NCBI GenBank assembly: GCA_965240325.2
Contig: OZ251245.1
Span: 372,001-436,000 of the forward strand
Length of the DNA: 64,000 nt
Origin: Rebecca billardiae RCC1528
Taxonomy: Eukaryota; Protista; Haptophyta
Direction: 5' to 3'
The stretch's first letter is position 1. Each line of letters begins with the position of its first letter. The notes below the pieces were generated by a model. That model was not told the origin of the DNA and searched no databases. It saw only the letters and a program-made list of their open reading frames with translations. Positions 2,781 through 24,560 of this stretch are shown one piece after another. A program made the translations under genes and the position numbers.

Positions 2781-4397
2781 ATGCCGGTGGGAACGTGCGC
2801 GTGCGCGAGGCGAAGCCTCGGCGGCGCTGCCGCGCTCATCCTCGCGGTGGGGTGTGCGATGCTCCTCGTCAGAAGCCGTTGGTCAACGCCGACTTGGCTC
2901 CTGTCGCCCACGACCGAGAGCGCACCCGTGCCGCAGCCGCTTGAGAAGGCGGGCGGCGGATGCGCACGCTGCCTGGCAACTCGGTGCCACGCACACCACA
3001 CGTGTGGCCGCTTCTTCTCCGAGCCCGCGGGGTGGCAGCGCCCGTTCTGCAAGTGCGCCTGCTGCCGCCTGCCGTGCGGCGTCCCGCGCCGGTGCCACGC
3101 CATCCCGCCTCACGCGCGCGGCTTTGCCATTAACGTGAGCACGCTCGTTGCCCGCGAGGACGGGGCGAGTGCCGCCTTCAAAGCGGCGGACGTGGGGCCC
3201 CAGCGGCCCGGCTCAGTGACGGCGGTCGCGCTCACGCCCGGCGCGCACGAGCTGATGGTCGCCGACGAGGCCCAAGGGGCCGTGCGCGTCGTCGGGCCGC
3301 TGCCAACCGACGTCGCCGACTCGGGTTCAAGCCCGCTGCGTCCGCACGTGCTTCGCGTCGGAAGCGGCGGGCGGCCGCGCGGTCTGGGCGCACGCGCCGC
3401 GGCGCATCCGAGCGTGCTCGTCGCGGACACGTTCGGCAGCGTGGTCCACCACCTCGACCTCGCCTCCGGCCGCCTCCTCCTCACCATCGGCAGCGGAGAA
3501 TGGGATCTCGTGGACGGCGCGCCCGCCACCGCAGCCTTCGCCTCACCGACCGGAATTGCCGTTTCCACCGATGGGGCCTTCGCGGTGGTGGCTGACACGG
3601 ACAACAACGCCGTCAGGCGCATCGAGCTGCCGTCCGGCCGCGTGCGCACGCTCGCCGGCGCGTACACCGAGCAGCCCGTCGACGGCCCCGTCGACGGCGT
3701 CGGCGCCGCCGCGCGCTTCTCTGGGCCTATGGGCGTGGCCCTGTCGGCGGATGGCGCCACGGTGTTCGTCGCAGACACGAGCAACCACGTGATCCGGGCC
3801 GTGGACGTGGCGACGGGGCGGACGAGCACGCTCGCCGGCACCGGCGAGCGCGGCGCGCGCGACGCCGGGGCTGGGGGCCACCGGCACGCCGAGGGCCAGT
3901 TCCACTCGCCGCGCGCGCTCTGCGTAGCGCCGGGCGGCGACGCGCTGCTCGTGGCTGACACGGGCAACCACCTGGTCCGGATGGTGGACATTTCCGGAAA
4001 TTGCCGCAGCCAGTGCGCGGTCTTGACACTCGCGGGGCAGGGCACGCCGGGCCACCGCGACGGCATCGCGCCCGCCTCGCTCTTCAAGTGGCCCGCGAGC
4101 ATCGACGCATCGTTCCTCGGCCCCGCCGACCGTGCCGCCGCAGTCGGTCCAGCCACCGATGCGGCCGACCGTGCCGCCGCAGTCGGTCCAGCCACCGATG
4201 CGGCCGACCGTGCCGCCGCAGTCGGTCCAGCCACCGATGCGGCCGACCGTGCCGCCGCAACGCACGGCGGCGCGAGTCCACTCGCCCACGTGTACGTCGC
4301 CGACGAGGGCAACGCGCGCGTGCGCCGCATCGTGTACGACGTGGCCGCGGTCCGGTGCAAGGCGACGCCGCATGCGCGCGAGTGCCGCCACGCGTAG
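2781..4397 (+). CDS. NHL-repeat beta-propeller protein with N-terminal anchor and Cys/His-rich module
   Basis: Repeated PxGIA...VADTxNxxVR motifs (VADTDNNAVRRI, VADTSNHVIRAV, VADTGNHLVRMV, VADEGNARVRRI) and an N-terminal hydrophobic segment. Confidence 0.88.
   Translation: MPVGTCACARRSLGGAAALILAVGCAMLLVRSRWSTPTWLLSPTTESAPVPQPLEKAGGGCARCLATRCHAHHTCGRFFSEPAGWQRPFCKCACCRLPCGVPRRCHAIPPHARGFAINVSTLVAREDGASAAFKAADVGPQRPGSVTAVALTPGAHELMVADEAQGAVRVVGPLPTDVADSGSSPLRPHVLRVGSGGRPRGLGARAAAHPSVLVADTFGSVVHHLDLASGRLLLTIGSGEWDLVDGAPATAAFASPTGIAVSTDGAFAVVADTDNNAVRRIELPSGRVRTLAGAYTEQPVDGPVDGVGAAARFSGPMGVALSADGATVFVADTSNHVIRAVDVATGRTSTLAGTGERGARDAGAGGHRHAEGQFHSPRALCVAPGGDALLVADTGNHLVRMVDISGNCRSQCAVLTLAGQGTPGHRDGIAPASLFKWPASIDASFLGPADRAAAVGPATDAADRAAAVGPATDAADRAAAVGPATDAADRAAATHGGASPLAHVYVADEGNARVRRIVYDVAAVRCKATPHARECRHA
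4125..4259 (+). repeat. 39-bp coding tandem repeat x3.5 (ADRAAAVGPATDA)
   Basis: Unit gccgaccgtgccgccgcagtcggtccagccaccgatgcg repeated identically in frame. Confidence 0.92.
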
Positions 4398-17072: not shown

Positions 17073-20000
17073 CTACCACGAAGCCAGGGCCTCCTCCACA
17101 CCAGCATACTCGTCCTCCTCCTCGCGTCGCCATAGCGCTGCGGATGCCGGGCCCGCCTGCCACGCGCCATCGGCGCGCGCGGCCTCCATCGAGGCAGAGA
17201 CGGTCACAGAGCCCGAGGCGGCTGCCGCTGCGCCGCCTGCAGACCTGACCGTTGGCGCGGCCGATGGCCACAGCGCAGGCAGCCGCCTGCCGCGCGTCCG
17301 ATCGCGCGGCCGGAGCCGATGCGCCCGGCGCGCTGCACGGTGATCGGCCGCGCCGCCATCGTGGCGCCCATGTCTCTTCTCGCGCAGCGCGGCTGCGCCG
17401 GGGTCTGCGGCGCCACGGGCGGGGCTGGGCGGCGGCGGCGGCGGACGCAACGGAGGCATCAGGGGCGGCGGCTGCGGCGCGACCGGCGGCGGTGACACCG
17501 GCGGCAGCAGTGGCGGCGGCGAGTTGGGCGAGGGTGGCGGCGGCGCGAGCGGCGGCATGAGCGGTGGCGGCGAGTTGGGCTCCAGAAAGGCTGAGGGTGG
17601 CGGCGAGAGCGGCGGCAACAGGGGCGGCGGCGAGTTGGGCTCGGAGGGTGGAGGGGGTGAGAGCGGAGGCAACAGGGGCGGCGGCGAGTTGGGCTCGGAG
17701 GGTGGCGGGGGTGAGGGCGGCGGCGGAGGTGACAGGGGCGGTAGAAGAGGCGGCGGCGAGTTGGGAGTGCTGAGTGCAGGCGGCAGCTGCGAGGGCGGCG
17801 GCGGCGGATGCAGCGGCGGGGGCGTTGGCGGCGACGAATTCGGCGGCGGCGGGGCGTGTGGCGGTGGCGCATGCGGCGGTGGCGGCGACGGTGGGAGCGA
17901 TGACGGCGGCGAATTCGGCGGCGGCGGGGCGTGTGGCGGTGGCGCATGCGGCGGTGGCGGCGACGGTGGGAGCGATGACGGCGGCGAATTCGGCGGCGGC
18001 GGGGCGTGTGGCGGTGGCAGTGGCGGCACTGGCGGTCGTGGCGATGGTGGCGGTGGCGGCGAGGGTGGGTTTGGTGATGGCGGCGATGGTGGGTTTGGCG
18101 ATGGCGGCAGGGGTGGCGACCGCTGCTGTGATAGCATCGGTGGCGACGGCGGCCGGAACGGAAGCGGGGGCGGTGGCGAAGGCGAGGGCGGCGGTGGCGA
18201 GGGCGAGGGCGGCGGCGGCGGCGAGGGCGGTGGCGGGGATGGCGAGGGGGGCGGCGGCGGTGGCGAGTGCGGCGGTGTCGGCGGTGACGGGGGCGGCTGG
18301 GGTGCCGCATGCTGCGGGCTCGGCGGCGGCGGCGGTGACGGCGGCGACGGCGGTGCTGGCGACGGCGGTGGCGGCGGCGAGCCAGGCGGCGGGCTGGGTG
18401 GCGGCGGCGGCGACGGCGAAATCTGTGCCCTGGGCGGCGGCAGCGGCGATGGCGGCGGTAGGGGCGAGGACGAAGGCGGAGGGTGTGGCGAGGGCGCGGG
18501 CGGCGGCGAGGGCGAGGGCGGCGGCGGCGAGGGCGAGGGCGGCGGCGGCGATGGCGAAGGCGAAGGCGGCCGCGGTGACGGCGGCGACGGCCGCGGCGAC
18601 GGCGACGGCGGGGCCGAAGGCGGGACACCGAAGAGGAAGAATGGCGGCGGCGGCGGCGGCGGTTGAGGCGACGGCGGCGGCGAGGGCGGGGGCGGCGAGG
18701 GCGAGGGCGGCGGCGGCGGCGGCGGTCGCGGCCCCGGCGGCGGCGACGCCACTCGCACCGGCGGCGGCCGCGGCGGCGGCGGCGGCGCTGGCATGCCCAG
18801 GCACGAGCCGTCGTCCAGCACCGCCTCGAGTTCGTAATTCCTCGCCGCGAGCAGCGTGCAGCCCCACTTGGGCGGGAACGCCTCCTCGAGCAGAGCGCGG
18901 CCGAACAGGGCGGAGAGGCGGGCGCGGCCGATCGCGCGGAGCGTGTCAAGCGCTTTCGTGCCGTCCGCCCGGTGCTCCACCCTGAGCACCACGTCGACTG
19001 CGCCCAGGTCGGGCCTCGGCCGGACGAAGGCGACGTGCTCGTGCGGCGCGGTCACGTACAGCACGTAGGCCACGCCCTGCAGCAGCTCCGACCGCGCGTC
19101 GTCGCTGTACAGCAGCGGCCAACCGTCCGCCTCCTCGAACCGAAACGCGACATACTCTGAGCCCGCGCCGCGCGGCGCGGCGAGGAGTCCCGTGGAGTCG
19201 CCGTCGCCGGCGATGCGAGCGGTGTTGTCGAGCAGCGGCGGCATGGGCGGCGGCGGCGGCGCGGGCCAGCTTGGCGGCGGCGAGGGCGGCGGCGGCGAGG
19301 GCGAGGGCGGCGGCGGCGGCGAGGGCGGCACGCGTGCGTGCGGCGAGGGCGACGCTGCCGGCGACGGCTGCGCAGGCGGCTGCCACGTGACAAAGGGCGG
19401 CGGCGCCGCCGCCGCCGGCTGCTGCCGCGGAGGCGACGGCGACGGTGGTGGCGCTCTCTCGCCCGCTCGCGCGCCCGGCGGCGGTAACCTCGGCGGCAGC
19501 GCAGGCGGGTGCGGCGGCGGGGAGGCCGCGCCCGGCGGCGGGAACCTCGGCGGTAGCGCCGGCGGGTGCGGCGGCGGGGAGGCCGCGCCCGGCGGCGGCA
19601 ACCTCGGCGGTAGCGCAGGCGGGTGCGGCGGCGGGGACGCCGGGCCGCTCTGGAATGGCGGCGGTGAATGCCGATGTCGCGACGAGCTGGGAAGCGGCGG
19701 CGGGCTCGGCGGCGGCGGCGACGGGCTCGGTGGCGGCGGCGGCGGGCTGGGCGGAGGCGGCGGCGACGGCTGCTGCCGCGGAGGCGAAGGCGACGGTGGT
19801 GGCGCTCTCTCGCCCGCTCGCGCGCCCGGCGGCGGTAACCTCGGCGGCAGCGCAGGCGGGTGCGGCGGCGGGGAGGCCGCGCCCGGCGGCGGCAACCTCG
19901 GCGGTAGCGCCGGCGGGTGCGGCGGCGGGGACGCCGGGCCGCTCTGGAATGGCGGCGGTGAATGCCGATGTCGCGACGAGCTGGGAAGCGGCGGCGGGCT

Positions 20001-23000
20001 CGGCGGCGGCGGCGACGGGCTCGGCGGCGGCGGCGACGGGCTGGGCGGAGGCGGCGGCGACGGCGGCGGCGGAGGCGTTGGCGGCGATGGGCTGGGCGGC
20101 GGCGAGGACGGGCTCGGCGGAGGCGGCGGCGACGGCGGCGGCGGAGGCCGTGGCGGCAGCGGCGACGGCATGGCAGGCGGCGGCCCAGGCGGCGGGGTCG
20201 GAGGCGGGCCGAGCGGCGGCGAGGGCGGCGGTGGCGAGAGCGCAACGCCTGCCTGGTTGATGTCGGCGTCCGCGTCCACGAAGATCTGTGCGACCTGCGC
20301 CGGGCTGAGCGCGCGCACCCAGAAGCCCACGTCGTCCAGCGTGCCCACCAGCGGCGCGCTGCCCGGCCGCACGCCCGCGCCCAGGCGCACCGGACCGGCC
20401 GGACTGGTGGAGAGCGGCACAGTCGTCACGCTGCTCGACGCAGCAGGACTGCCGTTCACAAAGAGAGTGAGCTCGCCCGCACCGGACTCGCCCGGACCGG
20501 ACTCGCCCGGACCGGACTCGCCGGACTCGTACGTCGCGACCACGTGCACCGGCGTGCCCAGCGGGTAGGCCGCAGCGTCGCACAGCGTCTGCGCGCCCGT
20601 GCTCACGCACACGCTGCCGCCCGCCGTGTGCACCTCGAAGAGGCCACCCGGGGAGTCCGCGCCGTACGACACCAGACCCGCGTCCGCGGCCGACGGGCCG
20701 GGCTGCTCGAACCAGAACGCCACGGTGCGCGAGCTGCCGCCCGTGGAGGGCGGCGGGCCGTCGAGCAGCTGCAGGTCGCCGTCAAAGCGCACGCACCGGC
20801 CCACCTTGCACCGCGCCGCCTCCTCGTAGCCCCAGCCCTCCACGCCGCCAGAGGCGCCCTCAAACCCAACGCGCGCACCGCCGGAGCCGTCGAGCGGCGC
20901 GAGCGCCGACGCGCCGCCCGCGTCGTCGGCCAGGCGGCCGTCGAGCGTGAAGTGCCGGACCAGCTCGGCGGGCGGTGGCGGCGGCGACGACGGTGGCGGA
21001 GGGGGCGCGGCCGGCGGCGCGGACGGCGGCGGCGGCGGCGAGTCGTCGCAGGCCACCGACAGCGCCTCCTGCGTCCCCTGCCGCGGGCCGTCGAGAACTT
21101 TCCACGAACCTTCCGGCGGCGGCAGCTCGCACAGCACCACGCCCGGCTCGTCCTCATCCGCGAGGCAGCCCTCGACGCCCGCGGCGAGCATGGCTGTGCA
21201 CTCCTCCGCAAAATGGCGCACGTCCGCCTTCGACACGTGGCAGATCTTGAGCGTCCAGCCCGTGCGCGGCAGGAACGACAAGAAGACGCGCTCGGCGCCG
21301 TGCGCGTGCGTGCCGACGCGCTCAGGAAGGCAGCGCGTGCCCTGCACGTCCGAGGCGTCGCACTCGTAGACGGGGCGGTCGTGCCGCAGCAGGACCTGGC
21401 GGTAGGCGAACGCGCCGGAGATGCGCAGGTGCTCGCAGCCCTTCCGCCCCGGGGCCGTCTCGGGCGGCGTCGTCCTCGGCGGCGTGCCGTGACTCGGGCG
21501 CGGCGGCGGCGGCGGCGCCCGGGGCGTCAATGGCGGCGGCGTGGTCGCGCCGATCATGCCGCCCGTGGAGGGGGAGGGCGAGGGCGGCGGCGGCGAGGGC
21601 GGGCTCGGCGACGTGCGCGGTGGAGGCTGCGCGCGAGGCACCGGCGGACCCGGCGAAGGTGCAGCCGACGGCAGGGGAGGCGGCTGGCCGGCGCGCGGCG
21701 AGGGCGAGGGCGATGACGCCGACATACGCGGCAGTGCAGGCGGCGGCGCCGGCGGCGATGCCGATGGTGCCGGTACGGAGCCTGGCGGCGTCGAAGGCGC
21801 TGGCGATGGTGACGACGGCGAGGGCGGGGGCGACGGCGCTGGAGCAGAGGCGGGCGAGGACGCGGGCGGCGCGGTCGACGCGGCCGGCGAATGCGGCAGC
21901 GGCAGTGGCGGCGGCAGCGGCAGCTGAGCGGGCGCAGGCGGCTGCGTTTGCCGTGCGGACGGCGATGGCGGCAGCGAGGCCAGGGACGGTGGGTGCGTCG
22001 GGGATTGTGGCGGGGGCGACGTCGAGGGCGGCGGGCTCGCTGGCGGCCGCATGGGCGGGAGTGGCGGCAGCGAGGGGAGCGGCGCTGGCGGCCGCGGCGG
22101 CGGCGACGGCGGGCGCAACAGAGGATGGGGCGGCGGCGACGGCGGGCGCATCGGGGGGCGGGGCGGGAGCGAAGGCGGCGACAGTGGCGGCCGAGGCGGC
22201 GGCGGCGCGGGCGGCGCGGGCGATGCGCGCCCAGACACTCCCGGCGGGAACGATGGCGGCGAAGGCGGCGAGGGCGGCGGCGAGGGCGGCGGTGGCGGCG
22301 GCGACGGGCTCGGTGGCGGCGGCGACGGGCTCGGCGGCGGCGGCGGCGACGGCGGCGAGGGCCGCGGCGGACTCGGTGGCGGCGACGGGCTCGGCGGTGG
22401 CGGCGGCGACGGCGGCGACGGCCGAGGCGGGCTGGGTGGCGGCGAGTCGTCGCACTCGAACGACAGCGCCTCCTGCGCCCCCTGCTGCGGGCCGTCCAGA
22501 ACTTTCCACGAACCTTCCGTCGGCGGCAGCTCGCACAGCACCACGCCCGGCTCGTCCGCAAAGCAGCCCTCGACGCCCGCGGCCAGCACGGCTGTGCACT
22601 CCTCCGCAAAATGGCGCACGTCCGCCGTGGCCGTGTCGCACTTCTTGAGCGTCCAGCCCGTGCGCGGCAGGAACGACAAGAAGACGCGCTCAGCGCCGTG
22701 CGCGTGCGTGCCCACGTGCTCGGGCAGGCAGCGCGTGCCCTGCACCTCGGACGCGTCGCACTCGTAGACGGGGCGGTCGTGCCGCAGAACCAACTGGCGG
22801 TACAGCAGATCGCCGCCGACGCGCAGCTGCCTGCAGCCCCTGCTCTGGGCGCCGCCTTCGGGCGGCAGGCTCGCGCCAGGCATGGACGGGTCGAGCGGGC
22901 CCGCGCGGCGTGCCTCTGGCGCGGGCGGCGCCTGCGGCGGCACCGGCGGCGACGGCGGCGACGGCGGCGACGGCGGCGGCGACGGCGGCGACGGCGGCGC

Positions 23001-24560
23001 CGCGGGAGAGCCCAACGCCAGCGGCGGGGGCGTCGTTCCAAAGAGTTGGTCAGGGGGTCGCGATGGCAGCGAGGGCGAGCGCGCGGGCTGCTGCCGAGGC
23101 GAGGGCGCTGGGCCCGTGCGCACGGCGCCGGGTGGCGCGGGCGGCGTGCTGTCGGCCGCAGTCGGTGGCGGCTGCGGCGCGCCCCTGGCGCCGCCACCCG
23201 TCGGCGTGGGAGATGGATGGCTGCGCGGCGGTGGTGGCGACGCCGGCGACGGCGAGGGTGACAACGACGGCTGTCGGCGCGCAAGCGGTGGCGTCGGCGA
23301 GGACAGCGCTGGTGGCGCCACGGGCGCCCTTGTGGGCGGCGGCATCGTCGCGCCAATCATCCCGCCGCCCGACGACGGCGACGGCGACGGCGACAATGCC
23401 GGCTGCCGGCGAGAGAGCGGCAGCGGCGACGACGGCGATGGCGACGGTGGCGCCACGGCCGGCAGGACTGACTCGCTCCCCGGAGGCGGCACGGGCGCTC
23501 GCAACGTCCCACCGCCAGGCGAGGACCTGAGCGATGGCGACGGCGAGGGCGAGGGCGGTCTAGACGCCAGCGGGTTCTGCGCGGGCGGCGGCGAGCGTGC
23601 ACCCGTCGTCGCGCCAGGGCCGGGAGTCGGCGACGGCGACGGCGACGGAGACAGTGACGGTGATGGTGATGGTGTGGTCGCCCCGGGAGGTTGTGGCGGC
23701 CGTCCGGGCGGCGGGCTCCGGGGCGAGGGCGGTGGGAAGGGCGGGTCGTCCAGCCCCTCCAGCCAGCCAAGCCCAAGCCTGTCCAGCCCGACAGGCGGCG
23801 GGGGCGCGGGGCTGGGCGGGGGCGGCGAGGGCGGCGGCGGGTGGGACGGCGGGGGCGCTGACGGCGGTGGCGGCAGCGGCGGCTCCGACGGCGGCGCGCT
23901 GGGCGGCTCGGCCAAGTAGTACGAAAAGTAGCGGTCGCCGTACCCGTCGATCCCCGTCGAGTACCAGCGCGCGTACCCGTGCGCCGTGCACGGCCCGTAC
24001 CCGAACGTGAGCCCGTCTCGCGCACCGGCCAGGTTCTTGCGAGCGACGGCGAGGCAAACGTGTGTGCACTGCCGCCCGATCAGGCGGATGGCCTCGAGGA
24101 CGACGCCGCCGTGAGGGAAGGCGGTGCGGCACGGGTTGGGCGCGTCTCGCGGCACCTCGACGGTGAGCGGCGACTCCGTGCCCGACTGCGCGCCCTCGCT
24201 GAGCTGGTTGAGGTCGACGCCATCCATCGAAGCGGGGTGATTCGCGCAGCCGCGCGGCAGGCCGCACATGACGCGGCAGCACGCGCACTGGCAGTACGGG
24301 ACCTCCGAGAGCGGGAGCAGGCCGACGGTCGGCCGCAGGTAGCACCGCGAGAGCGAGTGGTCCGTGTGACACCGCCGCTTTGTGCACGTGTCGCACCAAT
24401 GGCCGCGCTTCTCGATTGCCGCAGGCACGGGCGCGACCGCGCGCAGCCCGGGGGCTGCTTCGCCCACTCCGCGCGCGTGCTGCGCGCCACCGGCGAGCAG
24501 CACGAGCACGGTGGCACACGAGGCGAGCACCACCACCGCGCACGCGCTGGCGCGCTCCAT
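17073..24560 (-). CDS. Giant Pro/Ser-rich (extensin-like) extracellular protein with Cys modules and a LamG/pentraxin-like domain (~2,495 aa)
   Basis: N-terminal hydrophobic segment MERASACAVVVLASCATVLVLLAG and abundant SPPPP repeats. Two copies of a ~130-aa Cys domain. LamG-like motifs RTVAFW, HVVATY, LFVNG and GTLDDVGFWVRALS. Confidence 0.8.
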   Translation of the reverse strand: MERASACAVVVLASCATVLVLLAGGAQHARGVGEAAPGLRAVAPVPAAIEKRGHWCDTCTKRRCHTDHSLSRCYLRPTVGLLPLSEVPYCQCACCRVMCGLPRGCANHPASMDGVDLNQLSEGAQSGTESPLTVEVPRDAPNPCRTAFPHGGVVLEAIRLIGRQCTHVCLAVARKNLAGARDGLTFGYGPCTAHGYARWYSTGIDGYGDRYFSYYLAEPPSAPPSEPPLPPPPSAPPPSHPPPPSPPPPSPAPPPPVGLDRLGLGWLEGLDDPPFPPPSPRSPPPGRPPQPPGATTPSPSPSLSPSPSPSPTPGPGATTGARSPPPAQNPLASRPPSPSPSPSLRSSPGGGTLRAPVPPPGSESVLPAVAPPSPSPSSPLPLSRRQPALSPSPSPSSGGGMIGATMPPPTRAPVAPPALSSPTPPLARRQPSLSPSPSPASPPPPRSHPSPTPTGGGARGAPQPPPTAADSTPPAPPGAVRTGPAPSPRQQPARSPSLPSRPPDQLFGTTPPPLALGSPAAPPSPPSPPPSPPSPPSPPVPPQAPPAPEARRAGPLDPSMPGASLPPEGGAQSRGCRQLRVGGDLLYRQLVLRHDRPVYECDASEVQGTRCLPEHVGTHAHGAERVFLSFLPRTGWTLKKCDTATADVRHFAEECTAVLAAGVEGCFADEPGVVLCELPPTEGSWKVLDGPQQGAQEALSFECDDSPPPSPPRPSPPSPPPPPSPSPPPSPPRPSPPSPPPPPSPSPPPPSPSPPPPPPSPPPSPPSPPSFPPGVSGRASPAPPAPPPPRPPLSPPSLPPRPPMRPPSPPPHPLLRPPSPPPRPPAPLPSLPPLPPMRPPASPPPSTSPPPQSPTHPPSLASLPPSPSARQTQPPAPAQLPLPPPLPLPHSPAASTAPPASSPASAPAPSPPPSPSSPSPAPSTPPGSVPAPSASPPAPPPALPRMSASSPSPSPRAGQPPPLPSAAPSPGPPVPRAQPPPRTSPSPPSPPPPSPSPSTGGMIGATTPPPLTPRAPPPPPRPSHGTPPRTTPPETAPGRKGCEHLRISGAFAYRQVLLRHDRPVYECDASDVQGTRCLPERVGTHAHGAERVFLSFLPRTGWTLKICHVSKADVRHFAEECTAMLAAGVEGCLADEDEPGVVLCELPPPEGSWKVLDGPRQGTQEALSVACDDSPPPPPSAPPAAPPPPPSSPPPPPAELVRHFTLDGRLADDAGGASALAPLDGSGGARVGFEGASGGVEGWGYEEAARCKVGRCVRFDGDLQLLDGPPPSTGGSSRTVAFWFEQPGPSAADAGLVSYGADSPGGLFEVHTAGGSVCVSTGAQTLCDAAAYPLGTPVHVVATYESGESGPGESGPGESGAGELTLFVNGSPAASSSVTTVPLSTSPAGPVRLGAGVRPGSAPLVGTLDDVGFWVRALSPAQVAQIFVDADADINQAGVALSPPPPSPPLGPPPTPPPGPPPAMPSPLPPRPPPPPSPPPPPSPSSPPPSPSPPTPPPPPSPPPPPSPSPPPPSPSPPPPSPPPLPSSSRHRHSPPPFQSGPASPPPHPPALPPRLPPPGAASPPPHPPALPPRLPPPGARAGERAPPPSPSPPRQQPSPPPPPSPPPPPPSPSPPPPSPPPLPSSSRHRHSPPPFQSGPASPPPHPPALPPRLPPPGAASPPPHPPALPPRFPPPGAASPPPHPPALPPRLPPPGARAGERAPPPSPSPPRQQPAAAAPPPFVTWQPPAQPSPAASPSPHARVPPSPPPPPSPSPPPPSPPPSWPAPPPPPMPPLLDNTARIAGDGDSTGLLAAPRGAGSEYVAFRFEEADGWPLLYSDDARSELLQGVAYVLYVTAPHEHVAFVRPRPDLGAVDVVLRVEHRADGTKALDTLRAIGRARLSALFGRALLEEAFPPKWGCTLLAARNYELEAVLDDGSCLGMPAPPPPPRPPPVRVASPPPGPRPPPPPPPSPSPPPPSPPPSPQPPPPPPPFFLFGVPPSAPPSPSPRPSPPSPRPPSPSPSPPPPSPSPPPPSPSPPPAPSPHPPPSSSPLPPPSPLPPPRAQISPSPPPPPSPPPGSPPPPPSPAPPSPPSPPPPPSPQHAAPQPPPSPPTPPHSPPPPPPSPSPPPPSPPPPPSPSPPPPSPSPPPPLPFRPPSPPMLSQQRSPPLPPSPNPPSPPSPNPPSPPPPPSPRPPVPPLPPPHAPPPPNSPPSSLPPSPPPPHAPPPHAPPPPNSPPSSLPPSPPPPHAPPPHAPPPPNSSPPTPPPLHPPPPPSQLPPALSTPNSPPPLLPPLSPPPPPSPPPPSEPNSPPPLLPPLSPPPPSEPNSPPPLLPPLSPPPSAFLEPNSPPPLMPPLAPPPPSPNSPPPLLPPVSPPPVAPQPPPLMPPLRPPPPPPSPARGAADPGAAALREKRHGRHDGGAADHRAARRAHRLRPRDRTRGRRLPALWPSAAPTVRSAGGAAAAASGSVTVSASMEAARADGAWQAGPASAALWRREEEDEYAGVEEALASW

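Follow-up and report, generated by a model that had tools for sequence, protein, structure and literature searches.

Sortilin, a single-pass protein, carries ten conserved cysteines between its beta-propeller ectodomain and its membrane anchor, in the module known as the sortilin/Vps10p 10CC. CFEM domains, which are about 60 residues long, helical, cysteine-rich and lineage-restricted, are found on extracellular membrane-linked proteins of fungi. The LRRCT and LRRNT caps and the modules of the TNFR and EGF type are also small, disulfide-rich and extracellular; they adjoin the membrane or come after LRR arrays, and shuffling has spread them among surface receptors. Pavlovophytes branched off early as the sister class of all other haptophytes, and to our knowledge almost nothing is known about their surface proteins.

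Here we describe a cysteine-rich module of about 50–60 residues that is carried by two proteins encoded in a 64-kb stretch of the Rebecca billardiae genome (the whole stretch analysed, hereafter the window) and by many others in the same genome. With the 10CC (Sortilin_C) it shares only its logic, that of a ten-cysteine module set between an ectodomain and an anchor. The 10CC has about double the length and is invariably preceded by a Vps10 propeller, whereas the pavlovophyte module is found with many partners and in both orientations. It resembles CFEM in size, predicted helices, cysteine richness, lineage restriction and surface setting, but CFEM has eight cysteines with another spacing. Neither the LRR caps nor the EGF and TNFR modules match it in sequence or fold, and the folds of EGF and TNFR modules are beta-rich, in contrast to the three short helices predicted for the pavlovophyte module.

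Two unrelated proteins in the window share a ten-cysteine module

The features of the window that bear on the module are as follows.

2781..4397, + strand: single-exon gene for a 538-residue protein (the NHL protein) with an N-terminal anchor, a ten-cysteine module and an NHL beta-propeller, from the open frame, Pfam and homologues
2820..2870, + strand: N-terminal hydrophobic segment of the NHL protein, a signal anchor or signal peptide, from the translation and from a hydrophobic segment at the equivalent place in homologues
2922..3095, + strand: ten-cysteine module, copy 1, residues 48–105 of the NHL protein, comprising the APVP..EK lead plus C1 to C10
3123..4394, + strand: NHL-repeat beta-propeller region, from Pfam (NHL, SGL and TEN_NHL at residues 243–400) and alignment
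17073..24560, − strand: giant Pro/Ser-rich protein of 2495 residues with copy 2 of the module, from one uninterrupted frame, Pro-rich blocks and Laminin_G_3
20289..20747, − strand: Laminin_G_3/concanavalin-A-like lectin domain of the giant protein (Pfam PF13385, E 8.6e-13, residues 1272–1424)
23946..24137, − strand: second small Cys-containing module, directly after the ten-cysteine module of the giant protein, from its recurrence in a paralogue on contig C23 and in protein P0046
24246..24434, − strand: ten-cysteine module, copy 2, residues 43–105 of the giant protein
24489..24539, − strand: N-terminal hydrophobic segment of the giant protein, from the translation

A sequence-only reading of the window had claimed that the NHL protein and the giant protein share a module. 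We find it in both proteins at the positions listed, with translations that agree, and pairwise BLASTP of the first 140 residues of each gives E 2e-16 with 30 of 76 residues identical (39%). The aligned span is exactly the Cys-rich stretch; outside the module, comparison of the two proteins gave no significant similarity (best E 0.18), which upholds the same reading's view that the remainders are unrelated. It also holds for both copies that the module follows the N-terminal hydrophobic segment, at a distance of about 30 residues in the NHL protein and about 18 in the giant protein. Both copies have all ten cysteines and match a nine-copy profile at 1e-21 to 1e-24. In the giant-protein copy C4 is displaced by about 3 residues and a 5-residue insert stands before C5. 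The two window copies also have histidines in common.

The NHL protein matches Pfam NHL at E 1.3e-11. Six homologues are colinear with it from the anchor through the module to the last propeller blade, two of them paralogues in the same genome and four from other sources, one of which is an MMETSP transcript at 54% identity. Because the alignment with these six runs end to end and includes the module, the NHL copy belongs to real coding sequence; in the subfamily alignment all ten module cysteines are invariant. The N-terminal 230 residues of the giant protein align with a 234-residue protein of another source (E 2e-6). The concern that a copy might lie outside its true coding sequence is dispelled, as both window modules lie within it.

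At about 4119–4260 (+) the NHL protein contains about three in-frame tandem copies of a 13-residue, AADRAAAVGPATD-like unit that is absent from both paralogues and all four homologues (alignment columns 535–575). These units have the look of tandem 39-bp repeats that were recently inserted into a propeller loop.

In the giant protein, extensin-like SP(n) blocks, with up to 156 Pro per 250 residues, alternate with Cys-containing globular islands. This haptophyte protein is reminiscent of hydroxyproline-rich wall glycoproteins known from green algae and plants. Its second small module, of the pattern NPC ... C..VCL ... G.G.C..GY and about 65 residues long, is present twice in the C23 paralogue (L027:1334-2731, +; E 1e-11 and 5e-10) and once in P0046, a 234-residue protein from another source. 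It has no Pfam match.

The module belongs to a family of about 27 copies in the genome

A profile built from the two window copies was searched against the organism's own 72-Mb assembly and found eight further convincing copies (10 in all). With a nine-copy profile the count rose to about 27 copies, spread over 15 contigs and more than 20 open frames, with E-values from 1e-6 to 1e-26 and many copies between 1e-12 and 1e-26. The pair in the window is thus far from isolated, and the sequence-only reading's own reservation that no further copies might exist falls away.

In the 27-copy alignment the core is C-x2-C-x4-C-x5-10-C-x~14-C-x-C-x-CC-x3-C-x5-C. Eight of the cysteines are invariant, and C9 and C10 are kept in at least 90% and at least 70% of copies, respectively; copies that lack C10 at the usual site have another cysteine 9–22 residues further on. 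Exactly ten cysteines were counted in 51 of 70 module cores. Conservation also covers an R-x-G-aromatic-x-D-P-x-G loop, the Arg that precedes C3, the Ala that follows C4 and a Gln before C9. The module cores are basic, with a median net charge of +3 and a positive charge in 86%. The histidine columns are occupied in only 4–5 of the 27 genomic copies, and the original description of the module as Cys/His-rich has to be given up: it is a Cys-rich module whose conserved core is ten cysteines.

Some proteins carry tandem pairs of modules with Pro-rich linkers between them (contigs C7, C1 and C24). At G000:C27:1098758-1100223 (L026), two tandem genes about 1.3 kb apart each encode an anchor, a module and a poly-Gly/Pro-rich region, and their modules are nearly identical; here a module-bearing gene has recently undergone a local duplication. 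On contig 23 (L027:1541-1906, +), a Gly/His/Lys-rich low-complexity insert of about 60 residues stands between C3 and C4 of the module. Either the loop tolerates such an expansion, or an unrecognised intron has been read through in frame.

The module is usually close to a membrane segment

Transmembrane and hydrophobic segments were assigned by a simple hydropathy scan rather than a trained predictor. By this measure about 16–65 residues separate the module from the membrane segment, which is either an N-terminal anchor ahead of it or a C-terminal transmembrane helix behind it. An N-terminal hydrophobic segment comes first in the NHL, giant, Gly-rich and several other proteins, with the module some 24–62 residues further on, and in beta-helix, LRR and other hosts the module stands 16–64 residues ahead of a C-terminal transmembrane helix, after which comes a short tail. 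Among the database matches, 46 of 56 modules are within 65 residues of a hydrophobic segment (median gap 34.5 residues). In proteins of at least 300 residues, 21 of 28 modules are near a membrane segment, compared to 6.0 expected under random placement; none of 20,000 simulations reached 21, a significance that the kinship of paralogues overstates.

The family had been described from the window as an N-terminal module. This is correct for about half of it and does not stand as a general rule, since the module is membrane-proximal in either orientation. Proteins P0002, P0065 and P0070 have, in order, an N-terminal signal-like segment, the ectodomain, the module and a C-terminal transmembrane helix. 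Because the module lies between the ectodomain and the C-terminal helix in these three, we place it on the ectodomain (exoplasmic) side, and we infer that it would be exoplasmic in the class with an N-terminal anchor as well. Exceptions are found in proteins of about 800–890 residues whose module is at the extreme C-terminus, far from the predicted transmembrane segment (C20:86833, P0047, P0053, P0059 and P0060). Because of this C-terminal subgroup and of the internal tandem copies with Pro-rich linkers, membrane proximity is a strong tendency and not a rule.

In a maximum-likelihood tree of 70 modules, which is based on few columns and leaves many forks unresolved, the modules that precede a C-terminal transmembrane helix form a clade of 30 rows (support 92/95) in which LRR and beta-helix hosts are intermixed. 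A clade of modules that follow an N-terminal anchor (18 rows, support 89/77) includes the NHL clade (96/97) and the copy from the giant protein.

The module is combined with many different partners

Pfam scans of the host frames, several of which were read only within about 1.5 kb of the module, gave at least seven distinct partner architectures typical of surface proteins. The shuffling that had been proposed from two proteins is therefore seen across the family. The partners are as follows.

NHL propeller: the window gene and its paralogues on C11 and further along C29 (Pfam)
Right-handed beta-helix/PMP repeats (Beta_helix): C17, C22, C1 and C20 (Pfam)
LRR: C24 and C10, and the Diacronema proteins P0066 and P0011 (Pfam)
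LVIVD, a weak match: C32 (Pfam)
Laminin_G_3 (ConA-like): the giant protein (Pfam)
GT29 sialyltransferase-family domain: P0045 (Pfam)
Pro-rich or Gly-rich hosts: several proteins in which a Pfam domain is absent

The NHL, beta-helix/PMP, LRR, Laminin_G_3 and GT29 partners are all extracellular or luminal domain types.

One deposited protein, P0001 (Diacronema lutheri KAG8465141.1, 1506 residues), consists of three units of beta-helix plus module; modules 1 and 2 are identical, and a hydrophobic stretch follows each of these two. The gene model may have joined three tandem genes into one.

All matches with an organism name come from Pavlovales

When 1.84 billion representative proteins were searched exhaustively by HMMER with the 27-copy profile, only 61 matched at E<=1e-3, of which 21 reached E<=1e-10. 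Wherever a match has an organism name, the organism belongs to Pavlovales, namely Diacronema lutheri, Pavlova sp. CCMP459, Rebecca sp. RCC1486 and Pavlovales sp. CCMP2436. The rest are transcriptome, metagenome or read-assembly proteins without an organism name. Among the named matches in these 1.84 billion proteins there was no prymnesiophyte and no other eukaryote from outside Pavlovales. Frames of this genome match nine database proteins at 100% identity, and the deposited D. lutheri proteins are distinct from those of this genome, at 30–68% identity. As far as named sources show, and judged by sequence matches, the family is restricted to pavlovophyte haptophytes, in agreement with its earlier designation as lineage-specific.

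The module and its predicted fold matched no known family

AlphaFold2 was run with the 27-copy alignment on two modules. The NHL copy of the window was predicted with a pLDDT of 81.8 (five models ranging from 54 to 82), and a consensus-like copy, one of those ahead of a C-terminal transmembrane helix, with a pLDDT of 86.1 (five models, 81–86). Both models have three short helices, with C1 and C2 in helix 1, C4 at the start of helix 2 and C5–C8 in helix 3.

Neither window module matches a Pfam family at E<=1, so the possibility that the module is a known Pfam domain can be set aside; for the 27 genomic copies, the only Pfam match at E<=10 was one stray (Ribonuc_red_lgN, E 0.18). An hmmsearch of PDB sequences with the module profile gave no match at E<=10. 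Foldseek against the PDB gave none at E<=10 for either AlphaFold2 model. VIA-align against 48,161 representative chains gave one model a best Z of 2.3 and the other no match, and the ESM Atlas returned no match, only meaningless helical fragments. For a predicted model of about 55 residues, the absence of a structural match is weak evidence of a new fold. Full-text literature searches found no published description of the module. As far as these searches go, it is a previously undescribed domain family.

The described systems with which it might be confused can be set apart. No Sortilin_C or Sortilin-Vps10 domain was found by Pfam in any of the host proteins scanned. Membership of CFEM (PF05730) was rejected on the lack of a Pfam match and of a PDB fold match. 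The module is not an LRR C-terminal cap (LRRCT), since it also occurs with NHL, beta-helix, Laminin_G_3, Pro-rich, Gly-rich and GT29 partners.

The same genome also contains a YCACCxCY ten-cysteine repeat, found at least seven times in tandem at C11:1210149-1212922 and twice at C18:993005-993519 (L057-L059). It is like the module in having about ten cysteines, an APVP-type lead and a CACC core followed by a QCG motif. Homology of the two was rejected: hhalign aligned 16 columns with a probability of 1.8% and E 0.028, and the module HMM does not pick up the repeat. Going by these profile comparisons, we treat the YCACCxCY repeat as a separate module.

Discussion

Our preferred reading, which we hold to be probable, is that the module is a lineage-specific, exoplasmic, membrane-proximal domain with five disulfides, forming a rigid basic knob on which diverse ectodomains are mounted. 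In single-pass membrane proteins it would lie on the exoplasmic side, near the anchor. There its ten cysteines would pair into five disulfides, and these would hold the predicted three helices together as a compact knob. The knob could then serve as a pedestal or adapter, rigid and basic, that joins the membrane to ectodomains that differ greatly from one another. It is tempting to speculate that what the module most likely gives its hosts is a common membrane-proximal surface for handling or association.

Much the same observations could be read as those of a sorting or retention tag, by which a shared partner delivers or tethers diverse proteins to a pavlovophyte-specific surface structure (the knob-scale layer or periplast), possibly through intermolecular disulfides or the basic surface. 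That one module is found on many unrelated ectodomains, in only one algal class and in a constant placement relative to the membrane, would suit such a tag, as would its basic character (median net charge +3, positive in 86%) and its co-occurrence with extensin-like Pro-rich and Gly-rich wall-type sequences. However, the even and conserved number of cysteines leaves no obvious free one for intermolecular bonds, and the tag overlaps the pedestal or adapter and does not exclude it; as the main role of the module we regard it as rather unlikely. A bolder form, in which the module is a class-specific address or docking domain, a new fold through which one partner or self-association assembles dozens of unrelated ectodomains, from propellers, beta-helices and LRRs to lectins and extensin-like rods, into the distinctive pavlovophyte cell covering, strikes us as distinctly unlikely. 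So, to a slightly greater degree, does a metallothionein-like cysteine cluster that binds Zn or Cu and senses or buffers metal at the membrane surface. Its appeal comes from the CxxC, CxC and CC motifs, which resemble metal-thiolate clusters, and from the histidines common to the two window copies. Because the histidines are not conserved (4–5 of 27 copies), the idea of a Cys/His metal site is weak. The module's probable exoplasmic site beside LRR, beta-helix and lectin ectodomains is one where cysteines are normally oxidised, and their number is even, with a displaced cysteine compensated. Moreover, AlphaFold2 predicts a helical fold with confidence and without metal, and no Pfam metallothionein or zinc finger was matched at E<=10.

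We give almost no credence to two simpler explanations, a capping motif of one repeat family (LRRCT-like) and compositional chance in a GC-rich genome. In two LRR proteins the module does take the position of an LRR C-terminal cap, but the NHL, beta-helix, lectin, Pro-rich and GT29 partners speak against a cap for one repeat family. The base composition of the window, 60–80% GC, favours Ala/Arg/Gly/Pro/Cys-poor bias artefacts in general; chance would nevertheless have to account for E-values of 1e-12 to 1e-26 in many copies, for an invariant cysteine spacing and for homologues in the transcriptomes of other species.

The family is new and its type is familiar, that of a small disulfide-rich shuffled surface module. 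Broad principles are unchanged by it. It offers a candidate new small disulfide-rich fold and a clean case of domain shuffling within one algal class. For pavlovophytes, the domain singles out a set of single-pass surface proteins, more than 20 per genome, and none of the other named lineages searched has it. Used as an HMM, epitope or bait, it could help to catalogue and purify the pavlovophyte surface proteome, and it opens a route to asking how unrelated ectodomains are mounted on a membrane.
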